Shown: positions 14,901 to 60,637 of the stretch, piece by piece
Numbering within the stretch: the stretch's first letter is position 1
Layout of the letters: each line of letters begins with the position of its first letter
From: Mytilus californianus
Taxonomy: Eukaryota
DNA: 64,000 nucleotides
Reading direction: 5' to 3'
Assembly: GCF_021869535.1 (NCBI RefSeq)
Contig: NW_026262668.1
Location: 74,462,001-74,526,000, forward strand
The notes under the pieces: model-generated
Database searches by the model: none
What the model was told of the DNA's origin: nothing
The model's input: the letters and a program-made list of their open reading frames with translations, nothing else
Made by a program: the position numbers and the translations under genes

Positions 14901-17900
14901 ATTTATGAAAACAGAAAGTGTGTAACCATTACACAAATGCGAGATTAATGATTGTGATTTAAGTAAATGCTGCATACAAATGCTATAAAAATTTCAAAAT
15001 GCAAATTTTTATTTTTGCGAAACATACCCCGTAGCAATTTTCGCAATGAAAACATTGCAAAAATCTCTGAATTTACAGTACCTGTGGGCATACTATATCG
15101 TTTTGATTTTGGGGTAAGTTTCAACTGTAATGGCATTGGATATCCATTCTGTGGGAAATCTGGTACAAGCGAGGCTTCATTCAACGGGTGTTCATCATCA
15201 AATTCTGAAATATAGATAAATTCATTCGAAAATGAAATATAAAATTTTCATAATTAGATATCACAATTAGGGCAATCGGGAAAAGTATCAAACAAATTAT
15301 TTCTTTTGAATGATCTCTGCTTAAATTCAAAACAACAACACATGCCCAACATTTACGTCTTTTTCACTATAGACAATGGTGTAAAACGTGTTTATTACTC
15401 TTAATTTTGGAATATATGAATATTCAATTGGTTGTGTGCTTGTTTTTTTTTTTTGTTTTTTTTTTGTTTTTTTTAGACACAGCCATTAGAAAAATAATTT
15501 ATTTTGTCAGTCCTTATTTTTGAAAAGGGAAATTGAATTAGAATTTGCACCGGCATAAGCATGAAATTGATTAATCTGCTGGCAGAACACTATTTTTCTA
15601 TTTTAATCTACTGCTGTTTCCCTTTTGAGAGCACTGTAAATACCAAAAGGCTATTGTTTCAGACTAGTAAGATAAATGCCAAAGGCTTATTTCGAACCTA
15701 CTTTCACTGTGGTAGAATGGATTGGTTTTTAACGTCACGTGGTACATATTACATACATAACAGGACAAGAATATTTGATCTTGATGTGATGTGATTATGA
15801 ATAGACACACACGCGGGTCGGATGTTTAAGCTGTTAACACCAAAGGTGACAGTCTGCATGCAAATATATCACCCTACCAAGACACATTTTTTACTCCGAG
15901 GAGACTACTTGCTCTTAAATGCGGCGTGCTTAGCGAAGAAGCAGCAAACACCAATTTTTAAATCTTTGGTTTCAGCCGGCTGAGGGCCGAATCCACGACC
16001 TCTCAAGGCGAGCACACTATATCAAAATCACAGAGGCGGTATTTTGAATTAGGCATCTAACGACTTTCACAAACTACAACTAATTTTTCAACTTATTTCT
16101 ATTAAAATGGTAACATTTATGAAAAGTTAAATAACAACTGATGACTTTTGATAGAAAAAAGTAAAAGAACAAACAGCAGAAAAATGCCTCATATAATTAT
16201 GGAACACAATCTTCGAGAATAGATTAGGTCCAATTTAAAAAAAATAGCCTTATACAGAAACGATTGTGTGGTAATTAAATCTTATTGCGTTTTATACAAT
16301 TCATTTCCGTAAGGCACTGAACATTCGTATTTTGGGGGACAGGGGTTGGCATTGATTAAAAGAAGTTGTCAGATTTTGAATTTCCTTAAAATAATAAACA
16401 AAGGAAATGCAAGAATATATTTTTTGTATAGTTTTTCTTTAAGTTAGTTTAAGTATAATAACAAAATTGATTTAAAAAAATCATCCTTGTTCCTGTACAT
16501 AAAATTGAGAATGGAAATGTATATAAATCAAAGTTTACAAAAAAAGTATTGACCTATGAACATGCCCTCCCACACACATGGTGCCTAAAATATAATATTT
16601 ACCATCCATTGCCATTTTCTTTTCAAAAACTTTAAGATTTCTTTGCTCTAGAGCTTTGATTTTGTCTCGTTTCTTCTTCTTTTTACAGCAACAATAAATT
16701 AGAAGCGCCAGAAGAAGAAGAAATAGCAATCCAAATATAACTCCAAGTACAATGGGTAAAACGTTCACGGAATCTTCCGTAAATGCTGTAAGTAAACATT
16801 TATGTACGATTCTTAATTACAGATTTATAAATATATGTGCATTTTAAACAATACATCATCATTTTTAGCTTATGAATTATGCAAATGTATTTAAAAGAAG
16901 GTTGACCTTTGACTGCTTTTGTCGTGTTCTCGTCGGACTCTTTTTAACGTTGAAGCTCTCAAATATTTCATTTATTTGGCTTTTCATACCTTTAGTCTAT
17001 TTAGGGTTAATTTAGAAAAAAAATATGCCCGTTCACTGAATGCATATATGATACTCGCTAAAATTCTTGTGTCTATAGCTTTTCGCTTAAAGTGATCATG
17101 CTTATATACTTTGTATCTCATCTTCCAAAGTTTGATTGTAGTGCCAAATTTATTCCACTTGCAGAAATTTTGTAATTGCAAATTTATATGTTTTTTTTTT
17201 CAATTAGTTTCTGTCTTCTGTCTTGCACTTGCATACTGTTAATATCTTACCAAAAGTAGCACATAACACAGCAATCTCTTTTATTCACAGCAATTGTTAA
17301 ATTAAAAAAAAATAGAATTAAAGAAATAGTCAGTATTCCCCACTCTCCCAAGAAAACTTACAAAAACACAAAAACAAATTAGAAGAACTGCATTTCGTTT
17401 ATACAGTTCTATAGCTACAGAAACTTATACTTACGACAGGTCACTAAAAGAAAGAAGAAAATGAAACAACATTGGTTCGTTGAATTGAAAAAAAATAACA
17501 GCTAAATCATTTAAAACGTAAAATTTAAGGTTACATACTTTGCAACTAAATCTTTCAAACTGTTCAGTGTATTCAAAATTTACACATATCGAAAACTTTC
17601 TTGTTTTATAATATTATTATTCGCGTGTGAAAAGTATATACAAGATATATTTGTGTAATAGAACAACATACAATGTATATGGTTACATAATATTTGCAGT
17701 TTCTTTAAAGTTCAAATACAAGTATTTTTCGTACATATTCAGAATATTTGTTTTCTTTTAACGTATAAATATTTTACATTCAAGTGTATCTTTTAAAATA
17801 ATAATGAAATGCCATTATATAGTAGATTTACGTGTCCAATAGAAATGAAAACAGAAAATAAATGAACCGAAGATGAACACGTATATCAAATAAGAGTACA

Positions 17901-20900
17901 AATATCAGTAAGAGATGACTGAGAGGATCTTGGTTTGGCACATCTATGCTTTTATTCCAAGTTTTTCTTACATTTGCTTTTTTCCGCCCTATGGTCGATT
18001 ACATTTTTCAATTTCTATTTTTTCATTTCTGTCGGGCTGTTCATGAAAGTTTTTGTAAGATTTCCTTGTCCGATTTTAAAAAGAATTTCACCTTTTATAG
18101 TGTGCTTATTATTTGATGGATATTTTCTCCCTTCGGCTTACACCCTTTTCTCTACATCAGACCACCTTTACCGTAGTATGTTGCCCTCTAGATGTATTTT
18201 GGTTATTTTTGTCGTTGGGAAACACAACGTCTCATTGACGTTTACCCCGCATCTTCTTTTATTTATACAAAACTCTCAGTCGGGATTTTGCGAATTTTAA
18301 TTGTAATATGTCGTCTGTTCCTTGGGTGGGATAAAAAAGTAATTAATTTGTGATCTATTCCATATACTAGTAATATAACTGAGAGTCTAAAACTCGATCA
18401 GATTGCAAACAGAATATTCGTGTTTCCTAGTAAGATATTAAGTATACTTGAAATTTCAGAGCCTTTTATAGCTGACTATGCGGTATGAGTTTTGCTCATT
18501 GTTGAAGACCGTACAGTAACCCAGGCTATATAGTTGTTAACTTCTGTGTCATTTGGTCTCTGGTGGAGAGTTGTCTCATTGGCAATCATACCGCATCTAC
18601 ATATTTTTATATGTACATGACTATAAATGTCTGAAAATACAGGTTCAATCTCACCAATAGGTAAGTTAAGTTTAAAAAAAAATAACAATTGCAGTTATGC
18701 TTTTATTCAAATGCATGCACATATTTAACATAAATTTTGAATTTGCAAGGAGGAGAAATTTTGAAATATATTTGAAATTAGGAGAAATTTTACGAAGATT
18801 TGTATGTTCTCCTTCGTAGCTTCGTGCAGTTCATGCGTAATAATCATATTTACCGCTAGCTTTCAGAATGTAAAGTTGACCGGCAGTAATAGTTGTTGAA
18901 AGTTGATTTGCAGTGCATCGCTTCTGACTTGTGCTTACAAATATATGAGTTCCGTTTGAAGTCGCAGCCTGCAAATAAGCAAAAGACACTACATATATAT
19001 AAATCTTTCTATATTATCATATTTATGCGATGAAAATTTCAGTCAATAATACGCAGTTGTTCTCTTTTTTTTTTCTTCTTTTTTTTTTGAAAAGAATAAA
19101 ACATTGGGACAACATCACATCAAACACCGACAAAATCTATTTTATAACGAAACAGCACAACGAATACGTTAATTACATGTGTATTAACAAGTCCTCTAGT
19201 TTAAAATAAAATTTTAAAAAAGCATATTAAAATTTGTTTAAAGTTAAAGCTGTTAACAAAAATCAAATTTAGTGCCCCTATTTCAACAAGAAAGGGAGAT
19301 TTTCTGGAATTGTATTTTAATGTTTTCCATATTTTTAACATATAAACAAGTTCACTATATATATGCCCGAGATTTTGCGGTTATGAATAAAATCCAAAGA
19401 ATAAAAAGTAATCGATCCGATGCCGCGGCATTGTTTTGTCACCTGTTGTCTCCCCTCTTCTGTGTTTTACTTCAATAAAATACGTAATATACATGTGTAT
19501 ATGTAGATAATTAAAACTTTCATAAACGCCACTGATAATAACTTCAACTTACTATACAAACGAATTGAAATGTTGTTAGATCATTTGGCGTTGTACTGTC
19601 CATATTGTATAGGCCTGAATAGTATGTACCACCTCCAGTACTTGAATCATAAATGACAGACAAGCAACCAAGCTTTCCATCGCCTGTTAGAAAAAAAAAT
19701 ACTAATGAAATAGAGATTTTCGTAATTCAATAAAGTACTCTTATTTTCACGCTTAATTGCAATGGTACACTGGTCATAAATATGCAAATCTAGCTGCTGC
19801 ACACGTTTGCTGGTCTTTACATGGTTGTTAGTGTATATGTAGAGAGAGATCGTCAAAAACGGCTATATATACATGGTATTTGTTGATAAAAACTCATCTT
19901 TACTACGGTTACGATTGTAGCTGGGTTTTTGTTAACGTTTGTAGATTCCGAAATAATTAAAATTGAAAACACATGTTGAAAATTCAAAAAAATATTATAT
20001 AAAAACAAAATTTAATGTTTTCTGCTTATAGATTAATCTTGGACATCGTTAAGAAACAATAACTCAAAGTCCAGTCCATATTCGCTTTAACCTCTTGTTT
20101 ATTTGTAATAGACTCTTTTTAATGTATGATAATGCATCTTGCTATTTTATAAATATCCAAGTTAAAACCGGAGGTTCCAAATTTAAGTTTCAACATCGAA
20201 GATATTTTGTGATAAACTTCTTTAAAGTGAAAGTTAAAAAGATAAAAAGAAATATATGTGAACATATTTATTTAGTATGACGTCCATTATCACTGAACTA
20301 GTATACCTATTTGTTTAGGGGCCAGCTGAAGGACGCCTCCGGGTGCGGGATTTTCTCGCTGCATTGAAGACCCATTGGTGGCCTTCGGCTGTTGTCAGCT
20401 CTATGGTCGAGTTGTTGTCTCTTTAACACATTCCTCATTTCCATTCTTAATTTTATACTGTATGTTATGTAAATAAATATTAAACAAATCAAACATCAAA
20501 ACTTGAAAGTGAATATTTAAATACAGTTCTTACTGGTGTACATTCCAGAACCTGCACATGTTGCCTTGTTGAACTGAATAGACTGCCTATTATCACCGCC
20601 ACAAACGGTTAAATTATCATTCTGACAATCTGCCATGCTACTGGTTGGTGTCCCGTAGTAGTAAGTAAAATCGCCCAATATATGCGTCATGCAGTTAGTC
20701 GTTGCTGATGATGCTTCTCCTAAAATCGTATAAGAAAAATATACTTCAGGAGTATGTTTCGTAGGAATTTGATGAATTGGTTCATTGCAAAGTAAATCAC
20801 GTGACCTAGGAAATGATTCGTCTTAGTCATGTGCTTATTGTTTGGTAAAGGGTTGTAAATTGGTGTGTTCTCTAAACAAAATGAACATCTGTCATTTCTT

Positions 20901-23900
20901 AAAGAAAACAATAAAACTTATCGTTTTATAATATTAATTGATATTTTGAATAAAAAGGTTTCATCTGATCATAGATGTATAAACCCATAGATATGGGTTT
21001 ATACAATTGGGTTTATACATCTATGATCTGATAAATTTTTTAAAAATTAAGATCTAAATGGGCATAACGTATAGCCAGAGGCAATAAATTTGTGTAACAA
21101 TATAAACTAAAAATCTGAAATTTCAATTCTAGCATCGTAAAATTCTTATTATAAAAGTTCCCATGAAAGGTCAGAAAAACACTAGTTCTAAACACATCTC
21201 TGTATGGATTTAGATGAATAATAAGAAAACGTTTTCATTGCAAAGGGCTCTTTTTTTTCAGAACTGTAAAACAATGGTAGTTTACATTATAATTATTCGC
21301 ATTTTATTCTATCATAACCATGATAATTTGAACATATCACAGGGATCGTTGTCCCATAATAAATTAGATCTAGACAGTTTGCAAGTTTAACCTTTCCAAA
21401 AAAGGTATAGAGTGCTTGGCAGAAAATATCTGACATCATTGACTGTTATATGATACAGTAACTGATATATAGTGCAGGCGGTGTTGTCCCGATATCACAA
21501 TAGCATGAGTTCGAATCCCGGCGAGGGAAGAACAAAAATTTGCTTCCGCAAATTTGCAGATTTAACATTGTTGTGCTGATATTTAGAGTACTTATATATA
21601 TATATATATATATTTAATATATAATTCGTCTAAATAACAGCCCAACAATGTTAGATCTGTAAATTTGCGGAAGCAAATTTTTTGTTCTTCCCTGGCCGGG
21701 ATTCGAACTCATTCTACTGAGATATCGTGACACCAAATCGCCTTGCACAATGCCCGACGCGTTATACCACTCGACCACCTAGGCTCGACAAAAATCAAGC
21801 TTTCGATGGCCGGGTGTTACCTTTCCTCGTCAGTTTTTATCTAACGTCGTAACACAGTACATGATATATAAGGCATGAAGATGGAATATTACAGATCAGC
21901 TGAATTATCTTTCGTAGAGGATCTTACAAATTAATGTAGGATGCAGTCACAGAAATAATTATATTATAAGTACGTCTGAACCAGTGACAACTCTACGACA
22001 GATTTTATAACTGATGTAAAACATGGGATCGAATTCCTTAAGTGATAATTGGTTTTGATTGTTATATGTCAGTTTATGTTACTCTATTAATAATGTCTAT
22101 AGATCTGATATGGCATTCAAGAAATTTAAAAAAAAATCTATGTTTCATCCCGACAAAAATAATTTCGGTTTTTTTGGTATTGTTCGGTTGCTGTGTATAC
22201 CTTCATCTATACTCAGTCTGTTATTCATTATATGACAATTGTATTACTAAAATAAATACCGTAAAGTAAGTATAAACGGCACAGACAAAATGTGAAACAA
22301 TTCAAATAAAAAAGCTTATTGATGCTAAAAACAATAACAGAAAAACAAATATGACCGACAGCAACTACCGACAACCACTATAATAGCAGTAATAATTATA
22401 CTTGTATTACATACAACCCGTGACATATCCAAATTAAACACATACCACTTTTGACCATACTGTTAAATTCTGCTGAAGATGGTAGTGAACTGCATAACTC
22501 ACTGTCTGAAGGAGATGAAGTTGTCTCCCAAAAACTAATGCGTTCATTTCCGAAAACATGATTTTCATCTAAAAAAAAAGAACAAAATCCTGCTTTGCGA
22601 AATTTACATATCAGTGATTAGAATTAAATAAAATGTTTAAAACAAGGGAAAAAAGGATGATAAGAGTTTATCTTTCTGTAATCTACCACGTTTGACACTA
22701 GAACATCTCACTTTTGGTCGTGTAAAAATTCATCTTACTGGAATGGAAGTGCAACAAAACAAAATCTTAAAAAGTAGAATACTGCTGACACACACTAACA
22801 TTGTATCTGTCTTTATATCATACTGAACATCATTATGATAATTGAATAAGTAGTTAAAATGTAAAAACGAAGTACATGTAATTTGTTTAACCAAGGTAAC
22901 ATACTGTGGGCGTTGGTTCGTTATGAAAAACGATACTGTGCACTATGAATAAACTATGTAAACGACAAAACATCAAAATCACAAAAAGCAAATAGTAAAT
23001 ACAAGTATCAATGAATATTTTGGATATATCGTAATCAACTGTTACCCAAATTTTTGTTGGAGATCAGAAAACTTACTTAATTTTAGTTTATTTATATGTT
23101 TTGGAGTTTAGTGTGACGTCCATTTTCATTGAACTAGTACACAATTTTTTAGGGACCAGCTGAAGCCCGCCTACGGTGCGGGATGTTCTCGCTGTGTTGA
23201 AGACCCATTGGTGGCCTTCGGCTGTGTTCTGCTCTTTGGTCGGGTTGTTGTCTCTTTGACACATTCCCCATTTCCATTCTCAATTTTATTGAAGTCATTA
23301 GGGCCACATCAGGGCCTTTTAGGGTACATCCCTTGATGTGATGATATTGTCTGTATGTGTAACAGCGCGAGATATTTGCGCTTTTTGCTAGGACAATTGC
23401 TATTTTTAATGAAAATTTGTGCTTTTTTAATGGATATTTGTGCTTTTCAAAAAGGTCATTTCCGTTTTTTTAATAGGACATTTGCGCCTTATCAACATAA
23501 CTTTTGAGGTATCATAATGGTTAAGAGTTTAAGAATCATTATATATCCAAAACACAGCACATTCAAATATTTATCTACAGCTAAAAGACTGAATCTTTCG
23601 CCGTCATGCTTATGGAAGTAAATTCCATATAACAACCACGAACAACAGGTGGTTAAAAAATCAAATTGTGGTCTAAACAAATTGTAACAAGCTTATTTAC
23701 TATGACGGTAGAGTTCCTCGGACTTTCCATGCAATAGAATGGACACGAGATGATTATAGTTTCCATTTTTAAATCCACTAATGGTACATGTGTTTAAAGT
23801 GGCTTGAAGAATTTAGGGCACAATTTAAATGTTCCATCCATAAAAATTTCGTTTTCTCTGCCGTTTACCCGAATTATTTTTTTTTTCTCATTTTGTGGTC

Positions 23901-24664
23901 TGTACAGGATAATGTACAAAGAATGTGTGAACAGTTACATCTTTCTTTGACTTTGGTAAATTTGTTTAAGACCATATAGGTAAAAAGCATAAACGCCCTT
24001 AGCCCGTATGTTAGAATACATGTATATCACTTACCTGATTGCATATAGAAGTAGTAGTTGTTAGAATTCACGTAAGTAAACTGATAACAAATATAGGCAT
24101 TCCCAGGATGACCACTGAGGATAGTGAAAGTACTTGACCTGTGTAATATAGATAATTGATGAGAAAATTTAAAAAAGAACAAAATAATCTCAGAAGTCTA
24201 ATGTTTGTAACAGAAGGCCGGGTAAGCCATAGAACTTGACATGCTTAAAGGGGAACCGGAGGCCTTTTTTAATCGATAGTGAAAAAGTCTATTCTTTTCA
24301 AATGTCAAAGGTTAATTATCTTTATGTAGATTTATATCAGGTTTTTCTTTTCATACCAAAATTATTGCTGTTTTTTTTTCACCTAATGTATCTTATGTTG
24401 AGCTAGTAAACGAAATATACATGTTAAAAACACACCTATAGAACTATGCCATGAACAAAAAAATCAATAACTGCACTTACTTGACAACATATTTCAGACT
24501 TGATGGGTTTCTATCACAAGTAAAAGCAACGTTGGATGTTGATCCAGCTACGGAAGCAGACAATGTATCTAATGTCAAATAAGTTGAATTGATAATAATG
24601 TTGCCATAGTTACTGCTTATCCAAGTTCCTTCCAGGGAAGACGAAAACGTACATGCAGCATTAC
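8784..24664 (-). CDS. Gene A: uncharacterised type I membrane protein, ~800-870 aa. Exons: 24481-24664, 24035-24138, 22446-22568, 20534-20719, 19553-19683, 18854-18968, 17435-17443, 16603-16785 (TM), 15082-15204, [14486-14584], [13825-13956], 12325-13413, then 8784-8920 or 8966-9144
   Basis: All introns GT-AG and phases join without stops. Nearly every exon has a counterpart in gene B. Ectodomain starts ACTFSSSLEGTW; TM is VLPIVLGVIFGLLFLLLLALLIY followed by CCCKKKKK. Signal-peptide exon is uncertain; bracketed exons are less certain. Confidence 0.85.
8966..9144 (-). CDS. Gene A alternative terminal exon 1 (DSGISTDESPTGKVAEND...FHLPDYLK*)
   Basis: atatttcag acceptor in phase 1; 5' end duplicates that of 8784-8920. 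Confidence 0.55.
9278..9683. mobile_element. MITE-like repeat with inverted ends; family fragments at 14660-14860, 24860-25090, 26570-26750, 28520-28870 and 50400-50665
   Basis: GAGAGGCAAAAGATACCAAAGGG at 9280 and its reverse complement at 9650-9683; internal segments recur elsewhere in the window. Confidence 0.7.
11339..11620. repeat. ~165-bp partial tandem repeat with a Helentron/DINE-like terminus
   Basis: TTATAACTT.GAAAATTGCA...CACTCTAACTTAAGTT at 11339 and 11504, followed by GCGGCGGCATTCGTGTCC; family assignment is from memory. Confidence 0.5.
12325..13413 (-). CDS. Gene A large cytoplasmic exon (basic, Ser-rich, low complexity)
   Basis: 1089-bp open frame containing ORF 12317..13336; acceptor at 13414, donor after TCA G; motifs shared with 31069-32091. 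Confidence 0.9.
13825..13956 (-). CDS. Gene A candidate cassette exon (ANVEIQTERSYTSHEQMSDRNPGSFGGPTKQFHGSNRSLATQK)
   Basis: Strong T-rich acceptor, open phase 1/1, 132 bp; same position as 32385-32465 in gene B. Confidence 0.6.
14486..14584 (-). CDS. Gene A candidate cassette exon (VMSNRPPQKPENSERHITTNISNVKHDPLILEK)
   Basis: Open phase 1/1 frame with a reasonable acceptor but a weak gtacag donor; no homolog seen in gene B. Confidence 0.4.
15082..15204 (-). CDS. Gene A cytoplasmic exon (EFDDEHPLNEASLVPDFPQNGYPMPLQLKLTPKSKRYSMPT)
   Basis: Phase 1/1; homologous to 34903-34998 (DNDEYPLHEISLGPEFP). Confidence 0.82.
15795..16040 (-). mobile_element. tRNA-derived SINE (mollusc type)
   Basis: Degenerate tRNA-like head plus the central GCTGCTTCTTCGCTAAGCACGCCGCATT block recalled from mollusc SINEs. 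Confidence 0.6.
16603..16785 (-). CDS. Gene A transmembrane exon
   Basis: FTEDSVNVLPIVLGVIFGLLFLLLLALLIYCCCKKKKKRDK; phase 1/1; homologous to 43702-43899. Confidence 0.9.
17435..17443 (-). CDS. Gene A 9-nt microexon TGACCTGTC (V-T-C-P across junctions)
   Basis: ttttcttctttcttttag acceptor and gtaagt donor; matching microexon at 44961-44969 in gene B. Confidence 0.75.
18854..18968 (-). CDS. Gene A ectodomain exon (AATSNGTHIFVSTSQKRCTANQLSTTITAGQLYILKAS)
   Basis: Phase 0/1; homologous to 45698-45815. Confidence 0.82.
19553..19683 (-). CDS. Gene A ectodomain exon (DGKLGCLSVIYDSSTGGGTYYSGLYN...NDLTTFQFVCI)
   Basis: Phase 1/0; GTYYSGLYN and NDLTTF.F.CI shared with 46170-46291. Confidence 0.88.
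20534..20719 (-). CDS. Gene A ectodomain exon (EASSATTNCMTHILGDFTYYY...TVCGGDNRQSIQFNKATCAGSGMYT)
   Basis: Phase 1/1, four Cys matching 47474-47677. Confidence 0.85.
21472..21990. mobile_element. Two inverted copies of a tRNA-box-bearing repeat around a (TA)n spacer
   Basis: B-box GAGTTCGAATCCC on both strands (21506 region and 21700 region); arms ~21472-21585 and ~21625-21750. Confidence 0.75.
22446..22568 (-). CDS. Gene A ectodomain exon (ENHVFGNERISFWETTSSPSDSELCSSLPSSAEFNSMVKS)
   Basis: Phase 1/1, 123 bp, same length as 48363-48485; shared NER.SFWET and AEFNSMVK motifs. Confidence 0.88.
24035..24138 (-). CDS. Gene A ectodomain exon (SSTFTILSGHPGNAYICYQFTYVNSNNYYFYMQS)
   Basis: Phase 2/1, 104 bp, same length as the gene B homolog 49289-49392. 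Confidence 0.85.
24481..24664 (-). CDS. Gene A ectodomain exon (GNAACTFSSSLEGTWISSNYGNIIINSTYLTL...TCDRNPSSLKYVVK)
   Basis: ttttttag acceptor, gtaagt donor, phase 1/2; homologous to 49920-50112. Confidence 0.85.
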
Positions 24665-25211
24665 CTAAAAAATGCAGTCACTGTGGTATTATAGCACGTT
24701 GTTTCTTTAAAGTAGTACTAGTTGATATTAAATCAAATAAAAAGAAATCTGTTCGCTTTGAAGGTGTTATATCAATAAAAAATATAAGAGCTATACGTTA
24801 ACGAGACAAACCCCGTAGACATTAAAAACCTCTAAACAAGTTATATTTCTTCATCCGTTATATCAAATATATACGTAAAATCGATGAACAAAAAGAAAAA
24901 CAGTCCGCAAAATACGTAATAAAACAACCGAAAACTAAGGGTGAACTCAAGTGGTCCGAATGAGTTAGCAATTCCTGCCTCACTGGTGGCACCCGTCTTG
25001 TGCTCATGACAAGTAAAACGTCGATGATAAGTCGTATACAGTGATGTCACATTCGAAGAGAAGTAAGCATACCCTATGAGGTAGATCATCGATACGACTG
25101 TATAAGTTTAAACTACCGTCAAAACAGATTATCTAGTTAAGATAAAATAAAACTCATCATGCTTCACGTTAATTGTGAAATAAATGTAGAGTATACATCA
25201 ATGAGACGGCA

Positions 25212-25873
25212 ACAGATAACTAAAATAACATTTAGATGTAGACGTACTACGATATAGTCTACAACAATACACAGGTGTCTATACAAATAAACGAAACAGA
25301 TAACTAAAATAACATCTAGATGTAGACGTACTACGTAATAGTCTACAACAATACACAGGTGTCTATACAAACAAACGAAACAGATAACTAAAATAACATC
25401 TAGATGTAGACGTACTACGTAATAGTCTACAACAATACACAGGTGTCTATACAAACAAACGAAACAGATAACTAAAATAACATAGAGATGTAGACGTACT
25501 ACGTAATAGTCTGCAACAATACACAAGTGTCTATACAAACAAACGAAACAGATAACTAAAATAACATCTAGATGTAGACGTACTACGTAAAAGTCTACAA
25601 CAATACACAGGTGTCTATACAAACAAACGAAACAGATAACTAAAATAACATCTAGATGTAGACGTACTACGTAAAAGTCTACAACAATACACAAGTGTCT
25701 ATACAAACAAACGAAACAGATAACTAAAATAACATCTAGATGTAGACGTACTACGTAAAAGTCTACAACAATACACAGGTGTCTATACAAACAAACGAAA
25801 CAGATAACTAAAATAACATCTAGATGTAGACGTACTACGTAAAAGTCTACAACAATACACAGGTGTCTATACA
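25212..25873. repeat. 84-bp minisatellite, ~8 copies
   Basis: CAGATAACTA recurs at 25381 and 25801 (5 x 84 bp); copies are near-identical. Confidence 0.95.
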
Positions 25874-28800
25874 AAAATGCTGGCTCAAAAATGTGAATAA
25901 ATAAAAAAAACTATCAAAGATCTGCCATCAAAATCAAATCTCTGAATACGAAAAATATAAATAAACAAATGCAGTACAAAATACAACCATGCGTGAGATT
26001 CCTGACTTGTGACAGGCAGAACAAATATATAACAAACGTATGATCGCGATCCGTATTATTCATTTTCACTTGTCAATTTCGATGCATTTCCAGTGATTTC
26101 AACTTTGCAATCAATCATTATCATACTCTAAGAAACTGTGAAGGCATTAAATTCTTCAACTGTGCATTGACAGCATCCAATAAGAATACACGAATATACA
26201 AATGGTATAGCTATAATGTATCGCACTGAAGTAAACATACCGGGATATAAAGAATAAGAGTAATTTTGCATGATGTAATATTTCACGAACGAATTATTTA
26301 TATATATGATAGAGCGATAAATATTTATCTATAACGACAAATCTATTATGTTTTTATCCTTTTTGGGGCAAACAACTTCCCTCTGGTAAAACCATACAAA
26401 TAGGAAATCCTTACAATCTTTTAACTCGTACAGAATTCAATAGCTTAACAACACTGAACCAACTAAAGACAAGGGACATTATAAACAATATATCATAATG
26501 TTAAAAGTAACTATGCAATACACAACTACGAAACACTACAACAATTAATTCAAGGTAAAAAAAAGGATCTGCTAACCTTTCCGGGCACCTTAGACCCCGT
26601 GATTTGATTCGTGTTTCTCAGTCTTTAGTTTTCTATGCAGCGTTTTGTGGACTGGTTTGTCTTTTCGTCGTTTTTCTTTTTTTTAACCAAGGCGTTGTCA
26701 GTTTATCTTTGTCTTTTGAATGTCCCCTTGATTTCTTCCGCCTCTTTTTTTTTAAATTACGTATAAATAGCTCACTCTACGTCTTTACAAAGAAAATGCA
26801 TATGTTTATTCTCTAAGTTAAGGATGAAATAGAAAACATTTGTAATGCCTACCGTATGAGAATAAGTAACCGATTATTAATAAGTAAAATTCCGCATTCA
26901 TCACTTGTTTGCATAATTAAAACACATTTATGGAGTCTTATCAATTATTTTTATTGTCTCCATTTTATAAATATATATTGCGTTTATGTTTTCACCTAGT
27001 TACACACGTATTAGTGTGACGTCTCTTTAATGTTATTACAATTTTCTTTTTGTTTTAAATCATGACAAAAAGCAGAAAGTTTTAACCCTTTTCATTAAAT
27101 GGTATAAAATTTCTTATTGTCTTTTCGCTTTCACTCGAATCCTTCTATTGTACTATATATAATTACTGTTTCAAATATTGAATTAAAGTATTTCACATAT
27201 GAACAGTAAATCTGTAAATTTAACGTGACTTTTAATTCTTATATTAATTATAATATTGTTTTACATATTTAGAGCAGCATATCAGTTTTGACAATTTTAT
27301 GAATAATAACATAAAATGATAGGACTCCGGATTATCATTGAATAAAAGCATACCTCCCTCTAAAAAATCCCTAAACATAGAAATATCATATGGAGTTGAT
27401 TGCAGCTCTTTTCATTCACTATTGTATTTTCTGCGGATCGATTTAGAGCTTGACATATTCCATATACACTGTTTTTCGTTGAATTCATATGTCCTTTGGT
27501 TTATTTGTGTCAATGTGTAACTGTCTCATTGACGTATACACCTCACATCCATGGAACTATTGATTTTGCTGACAAAATATTAGAACGATAATAGTCAGAT
27601 TTTCGTAAAGAAAACGGATTAGTTAGCGTCAGTTATCGCCCTGTAACTGGATGAAACATAACAATTATAGACGTTACCATGCTGTTACTTGATGAAACAA
27701 CACTTATAGACGTTACCATGCTGCACATTTTAACAATTGCAGATTACATGAGTTTTTGGAATTTTTCAATAAACCTTTGAATTCAATACAAAACCGTAAC
27801 TGATAAACATTAAACTTCATTCAAAATCATGTGACGTGGAAATAATGGTATCATATATTTCTATAGTTTTATTGCTTTAATTTGGAAAAAAAACATGCAT
27901 ATATTCAAATACATGTATAATGAATCGTGTCGTGTTATTTCTACAAATTCTGGAAGAAATACTAAACTGCGGTAATACGAAAATAAAAACGCCTTTTTTG
28001 TGAAAAGTGGAGATAACTTACTCATCTGAATAAGTTGCAGAAAGAGCAGGACAATTTTTTAATGAAATTGCACAGACTGGTTCAAATTATAATATTTATA
28101 CATACTAAGACAAAAAAAGAAGATTTCCATAAACTGAAAAATAAAAGGAAACATGTTTTTCGTCCTCATTAAAACCACTTTACATTACAAATACGTGTTG
28201 TCCTCAATCTAAAGCACAAAAACAATGTTCTCATTAAAAGTGAATGTCTTTCAGAAAGCTACATTCATTTTTTGATAATTTGATAATTTGAAATGTTCAT
28301 TTATGTAATATATATTTCAATTTTACTGTTTTAAACAGGTTTTCTTTTTATAGTAAAATGCAATATTTTTTAGCTTAAATATTATTATGGTGTTTTTAAT
28401 TTATAGCCAAAAAAAAGATAGAAGTTTATAAACGATTCTCTATGTCAGTTCCACGAAAATTTGTATGTAAAACTGCAAATCACTTATAGGTATATCCTGT
28501 ATGAATAGTCTAGATCCATTCGTATAAAGAGGGCAATAAAAAAACATGAATAAAAGAAAGATGGACAACACAATGACTGCTTGAATGAAAGGAGGCAGAA
28601 AACAGGCAACACAACACTACAAAGCAAAGTAAGATTGAACAACACAAACCAAATACTGGGAACTGACGTGTTCTGTTAGCAGTTCCTGCTCCACTGGTGG
28701 TACCAGTTTCGACATGCAAGTTAAGTCTGATGGTAGGTCGCATTTAGTGATGTCCTGGAGGAATAACAGAGATTGTAGCTACGATACGCGAAACATTATC

Positions 28801-29908
28801 CGTTGTCATTTGTGACAAACATATTCCATATGGTCAATCAAATTATAATGGCGTCATTATAATTTTGATATACGTCGTAAAGAGCCAAATCCAGTATGAG
28901 AACAGATCACGTTTAATTTTTCTTGTTTGTGACGACTATAAAACTTATTTATTCAGTGATGTTACAAACCCTGATCATTGAAGTAGATTTTTTCAGACAT
29001 AACATTGCTCTTTCAAATATGCTACAAATCCAGTCTATATGTAACCCTTGTTAAGCAGTTTTGAGACAGGACAATGCTCTTTTAAGTATGTACCTGTATT
29101 TTTTACTGGTTAAACAGAAAATTAACCAAAATACCAGTTTTAATTAAAATCTTTGTATAGATTGGAGATAGAACTCATCAAGACCTCAGGCATAAGAGAC
29201 GTCCACGGTGCCGCTAAACCACCTAGGCTGTTCCAGGACTGTAACTGTCCAACAGTACTAGTGTTGCTGAAATGAAAAAGGACGTCCTTTTACCTGAGAG
29301 GGAAGAATATAAGTGCAGTATCTTCCGGTCGAAATAAGATCCTTTAATCCATTACCCGTTTCAGAAGAACTTAATGTTTTCCGCACGTATAATAAATCCT
29401 GTAGCTAGACATTTCAAATATTTTCGAAGGTCCCTTAGATGACGTCTAACAAGATTTATTTCTGATTCTATTCATACTTTTGCTATGGCATTAAATATGA
29501 TTACAACTAATATGCATGCAATCACACTGGACGTAGTAAACATAGGTTAATAAATCGATCATATATATTTCCATCCTCTAATTACTTCACCTGTATTGGT
29601 GCATTGTAGAAATATAGATAATTTCAATAGAGAAATAGGCAAATCCCTTTTTAATATATTTTTCTATCCAATATGTCAGCATTGAATGTTTGATACATGC
29701 ATCGTGTATTTACTCTGTCCTGAATTAAGTGATTGTTTAAATTATGTAATTATTTAGTGATAAAAAAACACAATACAAATGTTGTAATTTTTTTTAATTT
29801 CCTCTACATACATGTAACAGCAATTGAAAAAGATAAACTGTATAAAATTCGTCATGTGATTACGTAAGGATATACGGTTACAAATTCACAAAAATCGTAA
29901 GACGATGT

Positions 29909-30021
29909 TCAATGCCAAACTTGACGTCTGGCGTTAGCCTTGAAACTTTGAATGGTGTCTGGCAGTGGATATCCTTCTTCAAACAAAGACGAAGTTGAAT
30001 CGTCTGCTGAAACACCCGAAT
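29909..30021 (-). CDS. Gene B terminal exon (DSGVSADDSTSSLFEEGYPLPDTIQSFKANARRQVWH*)
   Basis: acatttcag acceptor in phase 1; homologous to 8784-8920. Confidence 0.82.
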
Positions 30022-33000
30022 CTGAAATGTAATTAACATCAAATTAAAGTTGTCATTCAAATTTCCAATTCAAAAAGGGAATGTTTTAAGGGCTCTTTTC
30101 ACAAAACATCTAACGACAAAAAATTGATCGTAAATTATACTGTTCAAAATGTTCATGACTTATGAGTATTTTTCACGCAAGATTTTGTTTGTGAAATGAG
30201 TCGTAGTTTCGGACATCCTGATTGGGCCAGACGTCATTTAAAATATCCTTGAAACTTCAATATGAAAAGGACTAATGTTGAATATTTGACTTTGATACGA
30301 TGCTTTGTTAAAAACATTCATTCTAATGGTAATTTTCAGTTTCCTGCTGTTAGACGGTACATTTATTTAGTAGTTGTCATTTACATTATACTTTCCAATT
30401 TTAACTAAGTAATTTATTGTTCCAATATATTAAAACTGAGATTACAACTTGGACTATCAGTCCCCGAGGGTATAACCAGCTCAATAGTTAGTTCTTTGGT
30501 ACTGACATGATTTATAACAAAAAAACTTTCTTGAATTGTCCGTTTATAAATTTTAAAAATATTAAGAAACAAAGGTTTCAACTCACTCAGCCAAAGTTGA
30601 CCTTAGATGGATTTGGCTATTATTTTTAGGTCCTTATTGGTCATATAGATCTTCAACTGTTTCGGTTCTTATACATCCTTTGCTAAATGCAGAAACGCGC
30701 TGCTGTCTTCCGATGTTCAAATCTCATAAATCAGTCAAGAAGATACAAAATGAAGGTAAGAAACATATACTGAGGGAATTCCATCAGCTTCGAAAGGTTC
30801 GAGACCGGCCGGTGCGTCTCAATGTATAAAATATTCATAAAAATCCGAAACACCATGGAATTACGTATTTTTGCCTGGAGATTGATTTTATACATGTACC
30901 CTTGGACACAAAATATACAACTATTAATCATGATATTTTTGAAACAAAATCAGTTAACATTTGCTTGTGCTTAAATGTTTTTAATGTTAGATTTTTGTAT
31001 AACAACTGTCTAATAGTTTCACCACTGTACAATTTGTCATATTTATCTCTACACCCTGAAATACATACCGGAAATTACGTCATAGTCCGTCGTTGCAAAT
31101 GCTCTTGAGGCAAACTTTTTGTTTGATTTTTTCACAGAATGTTTAGATTTAAAAGGTTCTATCTTTGGATTTTTGAATTTGTTGTAATACTTTATAGATG
31201 ACCGAGCCGGTTTAACAGGATGTAGAAAATAAGGTGATTTCCAATTTGTCCTTTTACTCATTGTTTTCTTTTTTTCTTCTGGTCTCTCTGCACTTTGTCT
31301 CATTTGCTTTTTTAATAACATAAACCTGTTTTCAGAACTCCTACTAGCTGGACGTGGTTCAAACGAATTGTCAAAAGTTCTAAGAGAATTATATGAAGAT
31401 ACTGATACCGGTCTTTGAAGCGTCTGCACATCTTTTTGTATAGATTTTCTATGTTTGTGCGGAATGTTTTCGTTTGATTCTCTAATCGTCTTCATCTTTC
31501 GTTCATTACCTCTTTGGCGCATTGACTGATGATAAGATTCAGACACCTTATGCTTTGAATTTTTAAATTCAAATAGCGGTTTTTCCTTGTTATATATTGT
31601 TTTTGTTTGTTTATATTGACGTACATCGTTTTTGAATACCTCACTGTCTTGAATTCTTTTGACTTTTGGGTAATGAGAATCATAGTTTACGGAGTTATGA
31701 GCTTTATTCATTTGCTCAAGTGAAACACTTTTTCTCATCTTTAACATTCGAGTTGTAGGCCTTGATAAATCATTCATTGAACTGGAGAGGCGATGGAAAG
31801 ATGAAGAGCGTGAATAATTTTCGGGTGATTCGTTAAATTCTTCACTGAACTCATTTAAGTCGGCAATATCTGCTAATTTATGCGAAAGCGACAGATTTTT
31901 CCTGGGTTTAGATTTGATTAAACTGCCATTAGTCTCTCTTGATTGTGATTTGGTGTACATATTGTCGAACGATCTTGCAGATGATATTCGGGCAACCTTA
32001 CTACTATGCTTGTTTTCTGATTGTAGGTAGTATGAACTCAATGATATATTGTTTTCCGAACTACTTCTTTCCAGTGTGGGTGTGGCTAGATCTGAAAGTA
32101 CGGAATAGCATACATGATGTTTAGTGCCACTGTAAATTAATATGACAACACAACCATCAACAATACACGTTAATGTTATCCAAAGAAAATACCAAAAATA
32201 AGACCTAGTATAGACAGGTACATTAATAATCAAGAGATGATACTTACAACAGGTGACACCATTATATTTTGTATACTTTACTTTTGTTTTCCCATTATAA
32301 ACTTTTACTCATATTTAGCAATATTCTAGCAGCACCCGCATTTGTTTTTTAAGTAAATACAACATTCTATATAATGTAAATTACTCCATCTTCCCGTTTC
32401 AGTTTTTCTTCGAAACGTTCTATTATCAGCTTTTTTAGTGTTGACGAGATGAGGATTGTTTTCAGCTTGCAGATTAAAGGGTGATATAGACAGGAGAGCA
32501 TTTTAGTTGTTGAACAGAAAGCAAAAATATTTCATAGGAATAGAGTCGTTCAATACAAATCACTGGCAGTTAAAGCAATCTCATGTTTTATCTATTAGTT
32601 GAAATTGTCGTAGAACTAGCTTTCAGTAACTTCTATAGGTACGTTGGGCTTTGTATTCTTTTTAAAGTTTTTAAAGTTTTTTTATGTTTTTTTTCTTTTG
32701 TGTTTCGCGCCGATCTGATGTTTACAGTTTGTTCTTATGTTCGTTGTGTTGTTACAGCACTGTCCCAGGTTAAGGGAAGGGTTGAACACTCACTCAAAAA
32801 CATGTTTAACCCCAGCACATTCTTAATGTGTCTGTCCTAAATCAGGAGCCTAAAACTCGTGGGTTGTCGTTGTTTGCTGTCTGTCCACCAACAGAGTTTG
32901 TGTGCCGTTCTATTTTCAGTAGATATTGTTCAGTCAATGTGTAAGTAAGATATACGTTTTCATCTTGAAGTTAAACGGGCTAGAAATAAAAGTTCATCTT

Positions 33001-39000: not shown

Positions 39001-42000
39001 AGAATAAGAGGTTTAAGCATACCCCGCGCTGGTCAACTTTCTGAGTTGTGGGTAAAATTCAATATACATGTAGGACTGTAAAACGGGAAATATACGAAAG
39101 ATTTGTTTTTACGTACGATGAAGTGTCATTCCCTCAATACATACGGGTCCACCGTGAAACTATTCTTATGATTATATAACGGTAAATGATGATCTCATTA
39201 GAGGAACAAATTAAGTAAAGATACATGTTAAAGCAAGAATAATTTCCACATGCAAAACATCAAATAGGACGATCTCTTAATTAATACGCGGCAACTTTAA
39301 CTATTACATTCATAGACAATAACACTAGTAAATGCTTTATATACTGACATTGAAACAAATATACTGCTCATAATAATTGCACATCTGTAGACTTTAATCT
39401 AGGTATCCCGCGTTATATAAACCATCGCAAACCATCGAACAGCTCATCGCACTTCGGCGCAGACCAGCGCACTTCGCGCGTGGCCATCAAACTTTATGAT
39501 CTCCATTGCACCTCCGAGTCATACACACATATATATTCCGATTTTCTAATAATGGTTTTTATTATTTTAATTGCCGTAGGTATTGCCCAAAGAAATAGGG
39601 TTTATTTAAGGGTTTACACATCTTCATAGCTAAAATATTTTGATACTTATATCACGAACAGATATCTATGACAAACATTACTTAAATTGTCAGTATATAA
39701 ATTTAGATTTTTTTTAAGAAACGTAGGTTTCAGCTACAGCAGACTAAATTGGCTTTTGATGGATTGAAGGCTTATGTAAAAATAAGAAAATGTGGTATAA
39801 TTGCTAGTGAGTCAACTATTCAAGAAAGTTCAAATCAAGAGGAATGCTAGTAGTTATATCTATACGACCTTCAATAATAAAAAAATACGGGAACTGTAAA
39901 GTCGGTTATTAAAGGCCCCGCCCCGACATGAAAAAAATATGAAACAATTCAATTGAGCAAACTAACGGCCTTCTTTATTTCAAAGCTACATGTATCTTGC
40001 CACAAAAAAAAGCCCAAATACATGTATATAACAGAATTGATGTTACGAAAACCACTGAACTACGTGCTTTTGACTTTGGACAGACACATAAATACACAGA
40101 ATCTTGTGAATGTGTATAGGCCCTTTATTGGTCATATAGCTCTACACTCTTATCTATTTTATACATTCTTTGGCTTTCAAATATTTAGCATTGAGCGTTC
40201 CTAGTGAAAGTAAGTCCAGAAAAGCGTTATAGATGCATGAAATTTATAAAGTGTTGTTTTGTGAGGGGATCAAAACGGAGGGATCGATGTTAATGTCTGT
40301 TTTATATGTGCAATAATATCGGCCTTCTAACTTTAGTGAAACTCTGCAGTTGTTCAGTGACGGATCCAGGGGAGGGTTCAGGGGGTTGCAACCCCCCTTT
40401 TTTGTACGATCAATGCATTTGAATGGGGACATATAGTTGGACCCCCCCCCCCCCTTTTTTGCCCTGGGTTGGGAACCCCATTTCTAAAATGGCTGGATCC
40501 GCCCCTCCGCCCCTGTTGTTTCATGTATTTGATATGCAAATTATCACAAAACTAAAAGGATAAGATGGATGAATTAATAGTTGATCGTTTTACGTCCAGT
40601 GGCATATATTATAGATTCATTATTAGGGGGAGTACAATAATTATGATATAATGATGAACATTGGCAATCATACCACAACTAATTTTTTATAAGAACGTAC
40701 ATGTGTAGATTTTCGTCTTTTACTGTAAACGACAGTGTCCCCGGGAGTCAAAGCCGAAATCAAACTTGTGTAAATTTCTGAAACATACATTTCATTATTT
40801 AACCCAATGTAAAGCAAAACAAATAATACTGTTTGAGCTATAAAACCAAGGCAACCCTTTATACTAGTCAAAAGTTGCTGGATCGTGATAGATGCATACG
40901 AAACTTCAATTAATTGTTTGTATTTTTTCAATCTTTTATATCCGATAAAGATGAACACAAAATCTAAAAACTACCGATTTTTCTATAAGATAAAATGTAT
41001 CCTTATTGGAGTCAAATTTGTCATATGGATTCATAAAGGACAAAAAAATGTCCTCAGTAAAGGAACAAAAAATACCCCCATGGTAAAATAATCCGTCATT
41101 CTTTAATACAAAGTACTATTGTGAATTATTTTTTCGGATATTAATCTTTTAGACATACATTAAAAACGGTGTCCTTGATATGCAACCATGAACACAATGA
41201 AAAGTGAATCTGTGAAAGTGTTCCATGTTTATTCCATTTAAATCAAGACTTGTTATGATTATACAATATATTTAACTATTTTATCAAAAAATTTAAATAA
41301 AAAAGAATATCTTAAACTCGTAAACACAATTTAAAGTTTAAAAAGTTCCTCAATTTAAAATCCTTCTTAAGGAATACGGGATATATTTGCGTGATCTTAT
41401 ACTTGTTTAATTAAAAAAATGCCTTCAAATACATATGTTTATTTGTATTCAATTTTCCACAAAACATATTTAGCTTATTTTAAATGAAAATAAAGAACAG
41501 AGAATAAAAACACTGTTGAAGAGAAAATACATATTCGTGTTAAATTCGCCTCAGTTTAATTTGTTAATTCAAGTTTGACATCTAAAATCGTAATCCGCAA
41601 TCCACATTTACCCGACAATCTTGTATATTGTATTTTCTCAATGGAAAAACCTTACGTGCACGTGACCATCAGAAACGAAGACAAAAATTATATTTTCTAA
41701 TGGTATTTATCAAAACTTAAATGTTTGAATATTTTAATAAGTAGAATATGAATTTGCCAAATAAGCGAAGAATTATAATCTTGCATTGTTCAACATCGGA
41801 GAAATGACTCAAGTTGAACATTAATCATGTTAATACTGATTCAATATTTTATTATAGTCTCACCACATACAAACATAAAATGAGAATCACAGAAATAAAC
41901 ATAAAACATTAAAACATTTGCATTGTATGTACCAATCTTAAAAAGAATAATGAGAGACTTTTAAGACACAATATATTTACTCATTTACATTTAAAATTTA

Positions 42001-45000
42001 CAGCGTCCACCTGTACTATATGAAAATAAAACATTTTTTCTTTGAGAACTAGGAAATAAAATGCAGTTTCTTTTCAATGAAATATTGTTGATGTTTTTGG
42101 CAACTATAGCAGCAACATTGCCGTTATTAAATAAAAATATTAATTTTTCGCTATCTGATAATTGAAGGTTAAAATGTTCATTAAAATGTTTAGCTTAATG
42201 TATCATAATTTGTCTTAAATCTACATATAATGGGCATTTTAAAATGACATGAAGTTCATCTTCAATAGTAGAGCTACAACACATGTCATCTCGTGGACTT
42301 CTTTTCTTTTATACTTTCCAGTTTCTATTTTTAGTGGAGCTACCCCACATCTAAATTTTGCAAAAGCACTGTTGTTTTTAATTGGCGGAATATTTTTAAC
42401 AAATAACAGTTGGCCAACAGTATATTTTTAAGCCCATTTCGCTCAGTTGAATAGAAATTCCAATTTATTGTTTGTACGTAGAACATGTATCATTATATTA
42501 AGATGTGTCAGTCCCAGCCAAGATTCACTGAATAACCACGAAATGTTTACAGATGATAAATAAATTTTACACAAAAATTCATGAATCTGTATGAACGTTA
42601 TGTACGATGAAGTTAATCAAGTGTTCACAAGAAAGTAAGTATGAATGTAAATTTTATTTAAAGTCGGAACATATATATACACTTTAACCGTGAGATAAAA
42701 TATAAGCTTTGATGAGCTCTATAACCGACTATCATATAAAAACCGCAATGAATGAACGTTACCCGATTAGAGATGAACGTTTGACAAATGCACGTTATCT
42801 GATGTACACAGTTATACACGATTGACGAACGCACGATACACGGTTAAGAATGAATGATTGATGAACGCACGATACACGCACGATGCACGCACCATACACG
42901 ATTAAGAATACACGGTGCACGCACGTTACACGGAAAATACACGGAACGATGAATGATGAGCGCACGATTGGTACACGCACGATACACGCACGCAACACGC
43001 ACGATACACGATGAACGCACGAAATAATGGTCAGTTTGAATTTTAGAAGGTCTGTAACAACGTAGACCGTGACAACTTCAGCAGCGAAAAAAATATACAT
43101 GAAATGATTTGTTAGTATTTGCATGGCGGGTGATGTATGCATAGGAGACGCGTACCTTGTTGACACATCCGTTATCGCTCCTTTTGGAGTTCATGCGATT
43201 GCATCTGTTTTTGTTTTAACCTTCATTTATATCTTCTTAATGGATTTATGAGATTTGAACATTGGTAAGCTACTGTTGCTTCAAATTTTCATCAAAGTAA
43301 CAAAGGTTCTTTTTTATTTGCATTACACTTCATTTTGGTCTGTGTGGCGTATATTATGTAACTTACAATTAAACTTATGTAAGATTGTCCTGTTTTTCTG
43401 ACGTGTGGTCAGAATAACATTAATTTCATGAAGATATCAATAGTTAATGCTAAACTTTTTCAGACTTACTAATGCTAATTTAACGTAAAGGTACATGAAG
43501 CAAGCTGCGTATTTTAAGTAAATATCGATTTCTAGACGTAACAAAGGTTATTCACAGACTATGTCGACAATCTTGTCCAATGTAAACTCAGTCCTCTTAT
43601 CAAAATCAATGTGCCATATTTTATAAGTGTTTTGTTTATTAACTTAAGTTTGTCTTACAATTTCAATATGATACAATTTTCTTACATGATAACAGATTTA
43701 CCTTTCACTGTCATTCTCTTTTTAAACACACTGATATTATTCTTTATTGTTGATTTGAGTTTCTGCTTTTGTCTTTGTTTTTTACAGTAAAAATACAGTT
43801 TGTATATTATTATAACCAGCAGAATTAGAAAAATTAGTCCGAAGATAACTCCCAAAACAATGGCGACTATGTTAACAGAATCAGATGATGATGTGAATGC
43901 TACAAAAATATTAAAATAAACACTGAAAATTATGAAAATTCGTTACTAATGACATATATACAATTATAAATATTACAAAACACCTAATAATAGTACACAA
44001 AAAAGTATTGCATCGATCATTAAAACGTTTCTGTTTTGGCATATCTTGCTTAGCACGTCAAATGTACACTGTATTTCGCCATTTACCGGAGGCATGCAGT
44101 TAACGTTTATAAATGATCTATATACAAATGTACTTCAAATAAGTTAATATTGAGATTTTAAAAAAATATCCGTCAAAAAATATACAGTGTCCATTTTAAA
44201 AAAAATACCATAACTGTTAACAATCAGAATGTTATCTGTGTAAAAAGAGTAAAGTTCTGACGTTTTGTACAAAAGTCGATAAAAATTAACGGTAAATACG
44301 TCGAGTAACGTTACCATTGCTTTAAAAACAGAACACCGTGCGTTACACGGGATCCTGACAAACCCTTTACTACATTTGCATGCCATTTGTTTCGTTGAAA
44401 AGATGACATAAAGGATAGTTGATAAAGATTTAACTGGTGTAACGGTATTTTTTATATATATGCTACGCAAATTTACCGCATTGGTATATAATCTTAAATA
44501 TATGGTAGTATACACCAACTGTATAATATATATTACAAATGCATATATAAACATTTAAAGAGGCGTTAATTTGGCTGATTTTAACAAATTAAAAAAATCG
44601 TCGCGAATACAAATAAAAAAAAGAAGCATATTAGTCATTTGTTGAGTGTCAAGTTTAAAAAAAAAACATACATCTAAAAACTTTCTTTTTGCTTTGTGGA
44701 TTTGAAAATACTGTATATTTTGGAATGATTTAAATGTAAGTCAATTTGAAACCTCTCATACGACTGGGTCAAACAGATTTACTTGAGAAAATAAGTCTTA
44801 TGGAAAATGCAAAAAAAAATAACCATTGAAGTTGTTTAACAATAGGCTTCATTTACTTTATGATGGATCGATATAATCCTATGTTTTAAAACAAATGAAT
44901 ACTTATGAAATGACAATTCAATTTATTTACAGAGATATCTTAGTAAATCTGAATACTTACGACAAGTGGCTACAACAAAAAAATTATTTAAATACACAAA

Positions 45001-60200: not shown

Positions 60201-60637
60201 TGCATTGCGTACACTAGATTTTTAATTTTACATTGTGTATATTGAGACAACTGTATATGTATTCTAGTTTGTTTTAGCATGGAAGTATTATATTGACAGG
60301 AACTAGAATCGCATGTAAATAAGTTTCTTACCCCATGTTGGATTATTTTGCGGGCGTATTTTGTAATTGTTTGTAACGTGTCTTGGTATTTTGTTAGACT
60401 CTGTTTTATTTGGTTTCAAACAGCTCCATTCTTTACAACATTGTCCTCTCACAGCCATCAATTCGGCATTGGGGCAAAATATCATAGACGGCTTCCGGTA
60501 CTCTTGAGGACACAAGTCAACGCAACCATAATGTCCATTTTGACAAGTGCAACGATTTCTACAATTATTGTTAAGATAAAACGTGTCGCCATCATTATAA
60601 CTTTTGCCATTGATCACACATGCTTTTGGAGTATTAG
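53964..60637 (-). CDS. CCN: CCN-family (CYR61/CTGF/NOV-like) matricellular protein gene, 3' part. Exons: 60332-60637 (VWC), 57435-57634 (TSP1), 53964-54203 (cystine knot)
   Basis: Domain order VWC-TSP1-CT, one domain per exon, phases 1/1, 1/0, 0/stop. Motifs CRNRCTCQNGHYGCVDLCP...CCKEWSC, WSQCSVTCGVGISVR...RLCYLRPC and KFCTNC...CCYP...F.C...WIKRCKCSRRC are CCN hallmarks. IGFBP and signal exons not found in the window. Confidence 0.92.
57435..57634 (-). CDS. CCN: CCN TSP1-domain exon
   Basis: WSQCSVTCGVG motif; gtaagt donor. Confidence 0.92.
59150..59520. repeat. Abundant short interspersed repeat (GAGAGTTGTCTCATTGGCA family); other copies near 2420-2830, 10540-10670, 18460-18610, 39770-40110, 45050-45190 and 62900-63190
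   Basis: Core motif and flanks found repeatedly in both orientations. Confidence 0.8.
60332..60637 (-). CDS. CCN: CCN VWC-domain exon
   Basis: ttattcttttcag acceptor, gtaaga donor; 10-Cys VWC pattern. Confidence 0.92.

Follow-up and report, generated by a model that had tools for sequence, protein, structure and literature searches.

A stretch of 64,000 nucleotides (nt) from Mytilus californianus (NW_026262668.1, positions 74,462,001 to 74,526,000), referred to as the window, harbors two tandem paralogous genes on its minus strand, here named A and B. In each gene, a unit of nine nucleotides lies between the last ectodomain exon and the transmembrane (TM) exon. The two units are most probably genuine internal coding microexons of single-pass membrane proteins with an ectodomain of the DUF7042 type. 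The microexon of gene A is real in the mRNA, where it was found in spliced transcript contigs. Its counterpart in gene B is very probably real, as judged from sequence features and family membership. The microexon is already present in some public gene models, and the phenomenon is of a known kind.

In gene A, the microexon TGACCTGTC occupies positions 17443-17435, preceded by a pyrimidine tract with AG (17444-17465) and followed by the donor GTAAGT (17429-17434). The site reads ...ttcttctttcttttAG/TGACCTGTC/GTAAGTataag on the minus strand. The candidate of gene B, CCACTTGTC at 44969-44961, has its acceptor tract and AG at 44970-44985 and the donor GTAAGT at 44955-44960 (...ttttttgttgtAG/CCACTTGTC/GTAAGTattc). 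The upstream exon f ends at 18854 in gene A and 45698 in gene B, and the TM exon starts at 16785 and 43899, respectively. Both units thus combine a length within the microexon range (9 nt, 30 nt or less), phase 1 to phase 1 and splice sites on both sides. Since both junctions are in phase 1, the units are read together with the split codons as V-T-C-P in gene A and T-T-C-P in gene B, and skipping would preserve the frame in both genes. A first reading of the sequence alone had described these pyrimidine-rich acceptors, perfect donors, encoded residues, flanking exon limits and the frame-neutral skipping, all of which were recovered at the positions above. Its placing of both units at the same position agrees with the common phase 1/1 and with a family-wide microexon at this site. 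The introns around the microexons were described as dissimilar, and an alignment of about 220 nt from each gene was indeed alike at the splice signals only; one repeat is shared elsewhere, in opposite orientation.

A chance origin of the paired sites was estimated by simulation. Both strands of the 64-kb window, whose sequence is free of N, together contain three instances of the arrangement AG-N9-GTAAGT, two of which are the microexons A and B. The candidate in the gene B intron is the sole arrangement of this kind there. Both introns contained such a site in 7.5e-4 of the trials (40,000 Markov-1 simulations), and two random 9-mers of the same composition share at least six of nine letters with a probability of 0.021. 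The combined chance estimate is about 1e-5 (about 7.5e-4 x 0.02). The gene B microexon matches in addition the family consensus NN-ACN-TGY-N and the family profile.

Transcripts were obtained for gene A. Four runs were compared with positions 13750-19700, three of which (X1, X3 and X4) represent two samples of one study and consist of assembled contigs. The tail exon of the gene was present in several runs of one organism. Contigs of 3.8-4.2 kb from X1, X3 and X4 cover the exons e, f, TM, h and i and lack the introns, which end in CT..AC on the plus strand, equal to GT..AG on the gene strand. The intron bins are almost without depth; therefore, the contigs represent spliced mRNAs. At the joint of 18854 and 16785, the contigs of X3 and X4 carry the nine letters GACAGGTCA, corresponding to the plus strand at 17435-17443. 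The X1 contig contains GACAGGTGA, an allele with GTG>GTC, which leaves the valine unchanged. Direct joining of 18854 to 16785, named by the sequence-only reading as the observation that would speak against the exon, was found in none of the three contigs. In Crassostrea gigas, all eight members of a sequence cluster contain I-T-C-P-F, six of them being short Logan contigs of transcript size.

Gene A and the orthologous locus of Mytilus edulis (L001) are collinear, with a nucleotide identity of about 70-90%; the protein P0001 of this locus was found with the gene A tail as query (94% identity). The microexon of M. edulis, TTACCTGCC, encodes V-T-C-P and retains the acceptor with its pyrimidine tract and AG as well as the GTAAGT donor. 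It differs from gene A at two positions, both synonymous third positions. Within the microexon, the window sequence, the X1 allele and M. edulis differ by synonymous third-position changes only. An island of raised intron conservation surrounds microexon A (17415-17551, minus strand), with 78-92% identity to M. edulis versus 66% in the aligned stretch, as obtained by sliding identity on a pairwise alignment of these two species. The island is a possible splicing-control sequence.

The family was delimited with the aid of a third Mytilus paralog (P0007-P0010), which carries Pfam DUF7042. A phmmer search with its ectodomain against 1.84 billion representatives yielded 209 representatives at E<=1e-3. 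All matches looked up belong to bivalves or gastropods, and no representative exceeded about 50% identity to A or B. Word-index searches with the gene A tail, P0001 and residues 1-300 of P0008 found no full-length A- or B-type protein, and hence none in the databases with precisely these microexons. Exon-wise tblastn resulted in 45-50% identity to P0009. The relatives score 35-57 bits against Pfam PF23069 (DUF7042, cut-off 27); single exons of the window compared with Pfam gave no DUF7042 match, only sub-threshold matches to DUF7043/7044 and generic TM matches. After joining of the exons, the ectodomains of A and B match a local hidden Markov model of 90 members at E values of about 1e-63 and 1e-65, covering profile positions 2-278 of 280, and inclusion of the microexon raises this score by about 5 bits. 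Both proteins show the family pattern of 11 near-invariant ectodomain Cys, a 12th Cys before the stalk or TM region, and one TM helix. No literature on DUF7042 or on this mollusc receptor-like family was found in the literature searched.

The ectodomain of gene A contains 12 Cys, 11 of which lie outside the microexon, in accordance with the count of the sequence-only reading. An alignment of 127 rows at the ectodomain end showed an invariant Cys in the 'KRC' motif of exon f and a Cys in 90 rows of the microexon column. The preceding residue is T in 50 and S in 17 rows, and the following is P in 24 and V in 15. Relatives lacking these residues had been put forward as counterevidence; instead, bivalve and gastropod members of the family agree on T-C-P/V as their consensus. 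When the entire ectodomain is considered, conservation amounts to 92-100% in 11 Cys columns; in the 12th, encoded by the microexon, it reaches 73%, which is a lower bound. The encoded Cys is thus an old ectodomain feature and not a lineage-specific addition, which fits constitutive use. As the microexon Cys is the 12th conserved ectodomain Cys of the family, constitutive or nearly constitutive use is the preferred reading, and the exon is apparently constitutive.

Proteins of relatives were mapped onto their own loci to place the microexon; the Pecten protein P0011 has no gene on record. A phase 1/1 microexon was found at the same position with 9 nt in Sinanodonta, Mactra, Mercenaria, Pinctada, Gigantopelta and Lottia, and with 12 nt in Haliotis. 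The donor GTAAGT follows directly in all 11 family loci examined. Judged from this distribution, the microexon predates the split of bivalves and gastropods. These lineages parted in the Cambrian. The exon is annotated in the public models of Gigantopelta (TTACCTGCC, V-T-C-P), Sinanodonta (TAACTTGCC, L-T-C-P), Mactra (TGACGTGTC, V-T-C-P) and Haliotis (CATCCTGCAACC, 12 nt, T-S-C-N-P). The public model of Mercenaria (AAACCTGCC) reads through the donor and ends E-T-C-R-K-stop. Three models lack the Cys, and in each the right intron contains a hidden candidate in the right phase: GTACTTGTG in paralog C of Mytilus galloprovincialis, CACCGTGTG in Lottia and TAACCTGTC in Pinctada. A natural loss of the Cys in paralog C and other relatives with 11 Cys was considered and was rejected for these three, whose DNA was available and contains a perfect candidate microexon in each case.

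A failure of automated annotation at exons this small had been anticipated and is common in the family, with reading through or splitting in M. edulis, Mercenaria and Mytilus trossulus and skipping in the M. galloprovincialis, Lottia and Pinctada models. The gene A ortholog of M. edulis is split at precisely the microexon into a 'secreted' model of 309 amino acids (L001 931-8112) and the 'cytoplasmic' P0001 of 554 amino acids (L001 10001-17746). The stop of the former at L001:8112 results from reading through the donor (V-T-C-R-K-Y-K-F-L-stop), and the latter takes its start from a Met inside the TM exon. The models of a fourth Mytilus paralog disagree: the exon is missing from an older one (..SLK-T-YTEAE), contained in those of RefSeq (..SLK-SSCP-YTEAE) and read through in one from M. 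trossulus. Among the Cys-bearing representatives, 15 of 88 end no more than 12 residues past the Cys, and eight of these 15 show the read-through signature C-[RSG]-[KE]. Two further models of the family are irregular at the following exon. The Mytilus coruscus model P0008 is without the stalk/TM exon, and the M. californianus model P0007 begins inside the intron before it. In paralog C of M. galloprovincialis, the TM exon (L006 7702-7995) additionally encodes about 35 residues that form a mucin-like stalk rich in Thr and Glu; genes A and B have no such stalk. The hidden microexon of paralog C would fall between barrel and stalk.

An AlphaFold2 model of the oyster ectodomain, based on a 90-row alignment, reached a predicted local distance difference test score (pLDDT) of 94.8 and a predicted template modelling score (pTM) of 0.91. 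It consists of two all-beta halves, and the I-T-C-P motif stands directly after the last barrel strand. The Pfam DUF7042 profile match stops about 20 residues before the microexon Cys. In the preferred reading, the nine bases finish the open codon of exon f, add Thr and Cys, and begin the Pro codon that is completed by the TM exon. The second barrel is thereby followed, immediately after its last strand, by x-T-C-P. Recognition of so short an exon would occur via the unusually strong donor GTAAGT and a good pyrimidine tract, and the conserved intronic flank may aid exon definition. The microexon Cys may pair with one of the 11 near-invariant Cys in an intramolecular disulfide. An analysis of Cys co-loss names no disulfide partner, since sequences devoid of the 12th Cys retain the other 11. 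Selection on the protein would keep the microexon.

No match at E<=1e-3 was obtained in a Foldseek search of the oyster model against the PDB. VIA-align aligned the second ectodomain half with lipocalin-like barrels at Z 6-8.4. The best alignment was to 5jk2_A (Z 8.4, 97 residues, root mean square deviation 3.0, residues 145-271 of the model). APCDD1 (PDB 8e0r), a single-pass protein with a two-barrel ectodomain, aligned to the second half at Z 6.2. The oyster relative and APCDD1 have two barrels followed by one TM helix in common. The mollusc family is without sequence similarity to the lipocalins and APCDD1, and according to a warning of VIA-align itself, such middling Z scores may reflect a common arrangement only. 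On the basis of the model, these likenesses are resemblances only and do not indicate membership.

Several observations weigh against genuine and constitutive microexons in both genes. The RNA of gene A consists of assembled contigs from one study, and the raw-read run X21 is without depth on the gene. Contigs drop rare variants, and therefore a minor or tissue-specific skipped form of gene A may exist. The RNA observed belongs to gene A, and the use of the gene B microexon is suggested by chance estimates and family evidence. The transcript-derived relative P0086 has no Cys at the microexon position, where skipping and gene-level loss are indistinguishable. Members truly devoid of the 12th Cys would keep the other 11; therefore, the Cys may be dispensable in some lineages.

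The sequence-only reading proposed a splice-controlled switch of disulfide pairing or dimerisation. Accordingly, the microexon would be a regulated cassette, whose skipping in certain tissues or conditions yields an in-frame isoform without the 12th Cys, with an unpaired thiol and altered disulfide pairing or dimerisation. The retained frame in both genes would permit such a use, a conserved intronic island as beside microexon A is typical of regulated microexons, and the Cys-less P0086 could be a skipped product. However, the exon was present in every spliced sequence checked, i.e. in the three gene A contigs, in eight of eight C. gigas members and in several RefSeq models spanning the site. 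Wherever a Cys-less public model could be compared with its DNA, an annotation omission was the cause, and the residue is old and structural in character. The switch was thus not borne out, and a regulated cassette is unlikely. Slightly less likely still is its extended form, a cassette regulated since before the bivalve-gastropod split and skipped in particular tissues, stages or stresses, leaving the partner Cys unpaired. If true, regulated skipping would create a redox- or dimerisation-competent isoform across a mollusc surface receptor family.

A second alternative restricts the microexon to gene A. The look-alike of gene B would then be a decaying relic or a chance site, and 45698 would be joined to 43899. 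This direct splice stays in frame, and the evidence for gene B comes from genomic sequence. Against a relic, the solitary candidate of the gene B intron has retained its phase and pyrimidine tract as well as the codons for Thr and Cys. It completes the 12-Cys pattern and contributes about 5 bits to the family profile score. The ectodomain piece of gene B is open throughout, and all its other exons are open with canonical splice sites. Usage in gene A only is therefore considered quite improbable. A reading of the units as chance motifs or non-coding splicing intermediates, such as recursive splice sites, whose architecture an AG closely followed by GTAAGT resembles, is hardly credible, as it is refuted for gene A by the nine letters in mature contigs and the motif occurs in annotated or transcript-derived proteins of many relatives.

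The reconstructed gene models all lie on the minus strand. The first coding exon of gene A (26853-26901) encodes a signal peptide, MNAEFYLLIIGYLFSY, and corresponds to the beginning of the M. edulis model (L001:931). The first barrel begins in exon a ('ACTF', 24481-24664), followed by exon b (24035-24138), exon c (22446-22568) and exon d (20534-20719), the donor of which was picked by phase and retention of a conserved Cys. Exon e (19553-19683) is also found in transcript contigs. Exon f (18854-18968), which ends in phase 1, encodes the region of the last strand of the second barrel including the invariant Cys of 'KRC'; like the TM exon (16603-16785, phase 1 to 1), it is also represented by contig pieces. 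The cytoplasmic part comprises exon h (15082-15204), exon i (13825-13956) and a large exon (12325-13413). Two further 3' exons are located approximately near 11.2-11.3 kb and 8.97-9.15 kb. In gene B, the ectodomain exons a-e were assigned to 50112-49920, 49392-49289, 48485-48363, 47677-47474 (donor of exon d inferred) and 46291-46170, exon f to 45698-45815 and the TM exon to 43702-43899. An open frame at 31052-32308 contains its large cytoplasmic exon with unrefined limits and ends ...FATTDYDVISG, as does the large cytoplasmic exon of gene A. When gene A frames were compared with the gene B region by tblastn, the exons a, b, c, d, e and TM of A and B paired up, and splice sites and phases agree between the paralogs.

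A minisatellite at 25211-25875 in the first intron of gene A (7.9 copies of an 84-nt unit, 97% identity) gives rise to a long minus-strand open frame that is spurious. An interspersed repeat occurs at 18327-18724 in a gene A intron, at 45040-45176 in a gene B intron in opposite orientation, and at 59454-59522. Only about 70 nt separate the gene B copy from microexon B, which lies downstream of it. Summed word depth over this repeat reached about 42,000 in transcriptome runs, with many variants and loose ends. A second high-copy element at 14546-15142, adjoining exon h, showed depths up to about 6,000 in contig runs; related copies lie in opposite orientation at 50459-50571. The stretch 63285-64000 is a direct repeat (period about 432 nt), whose minus-strand frames recur at 63285-63467/63717-63899 and 63410-63619/63842-64000. 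Upstream of gene B, exons of a CCN-family-like gene were detected on the minus strand (57408-57635 and 60306-60692), with a TSP1_CCN domain (56.5 bits) and a VWC domain (30.5 bits). The downstream neighbour at the M. edulis locus (L001 26584-27746) is a receptor guanylate cyclase-like gene with NIT, HNOBA and Guanylate_cyc domains.

The microexon is a clean example of a 9-nt exon whose phase and GTAAGT donor have persisted in both bivalves and gastropods. It marks where the uncharacterised ectodomain found throughout molluscs truly ends on its C-terminal side. It also provides an annotation check: a family model with 11 ectodomain Cys, or with an end in C-R-K or C-S-K, points to a microexon that was skipped or read through and to a gene wrongly split into a 'secreted' and a 'cytoplasmic' half. 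Corrected models would turn many apparent secreted or orphan proteins into single-pass receptors.

Known systems show both likeness and difference. Public relatives containing the exon are Gigantopelta XP_041359795.1, Haliotis XP_067660574.1, M. edulis XP_071123982.1 and C. gigas XP_011450892.2, which place the exon at the same position and in the same phase as A and B and share the T/S-C motif. They represent paralogs or other members of the family; the gene A ortholog of M. edulis is read through at the donor and split in the public models. Neuronal microexons of animals are regulated by SRRM4. Animal microexons of 30 nt or less are alternatively spliced and largely neuronal (PMC7821500). 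Size class, symmetric phase and strong flanking signals are common to them and the mussel exons, as are conserved flanking intron sequence and the difficulty for standard aligners. Unlike the neuronal microexons, the mussel exon has shown no alternative use in the sequences seen, and its residue, a conserved Cys, appears to be a structural element and not a modulator of the surface. In plants, small microexons of 15 nt or less are constitutive, conserved, domain-coding and widely misannotated (PMC8831610). The mollusc exons are likewise very short, frame-preserving, deeply conserved, coding for part of a conserved domain and frequently absent from or incorrect in reference annotations. In contrast to the plant microexons, they belong to one uncharacterised receptor-like family of molluscs, and an odd Cys count or an end in C-R-K or C-S-K can reveal an error in a mollusc model.

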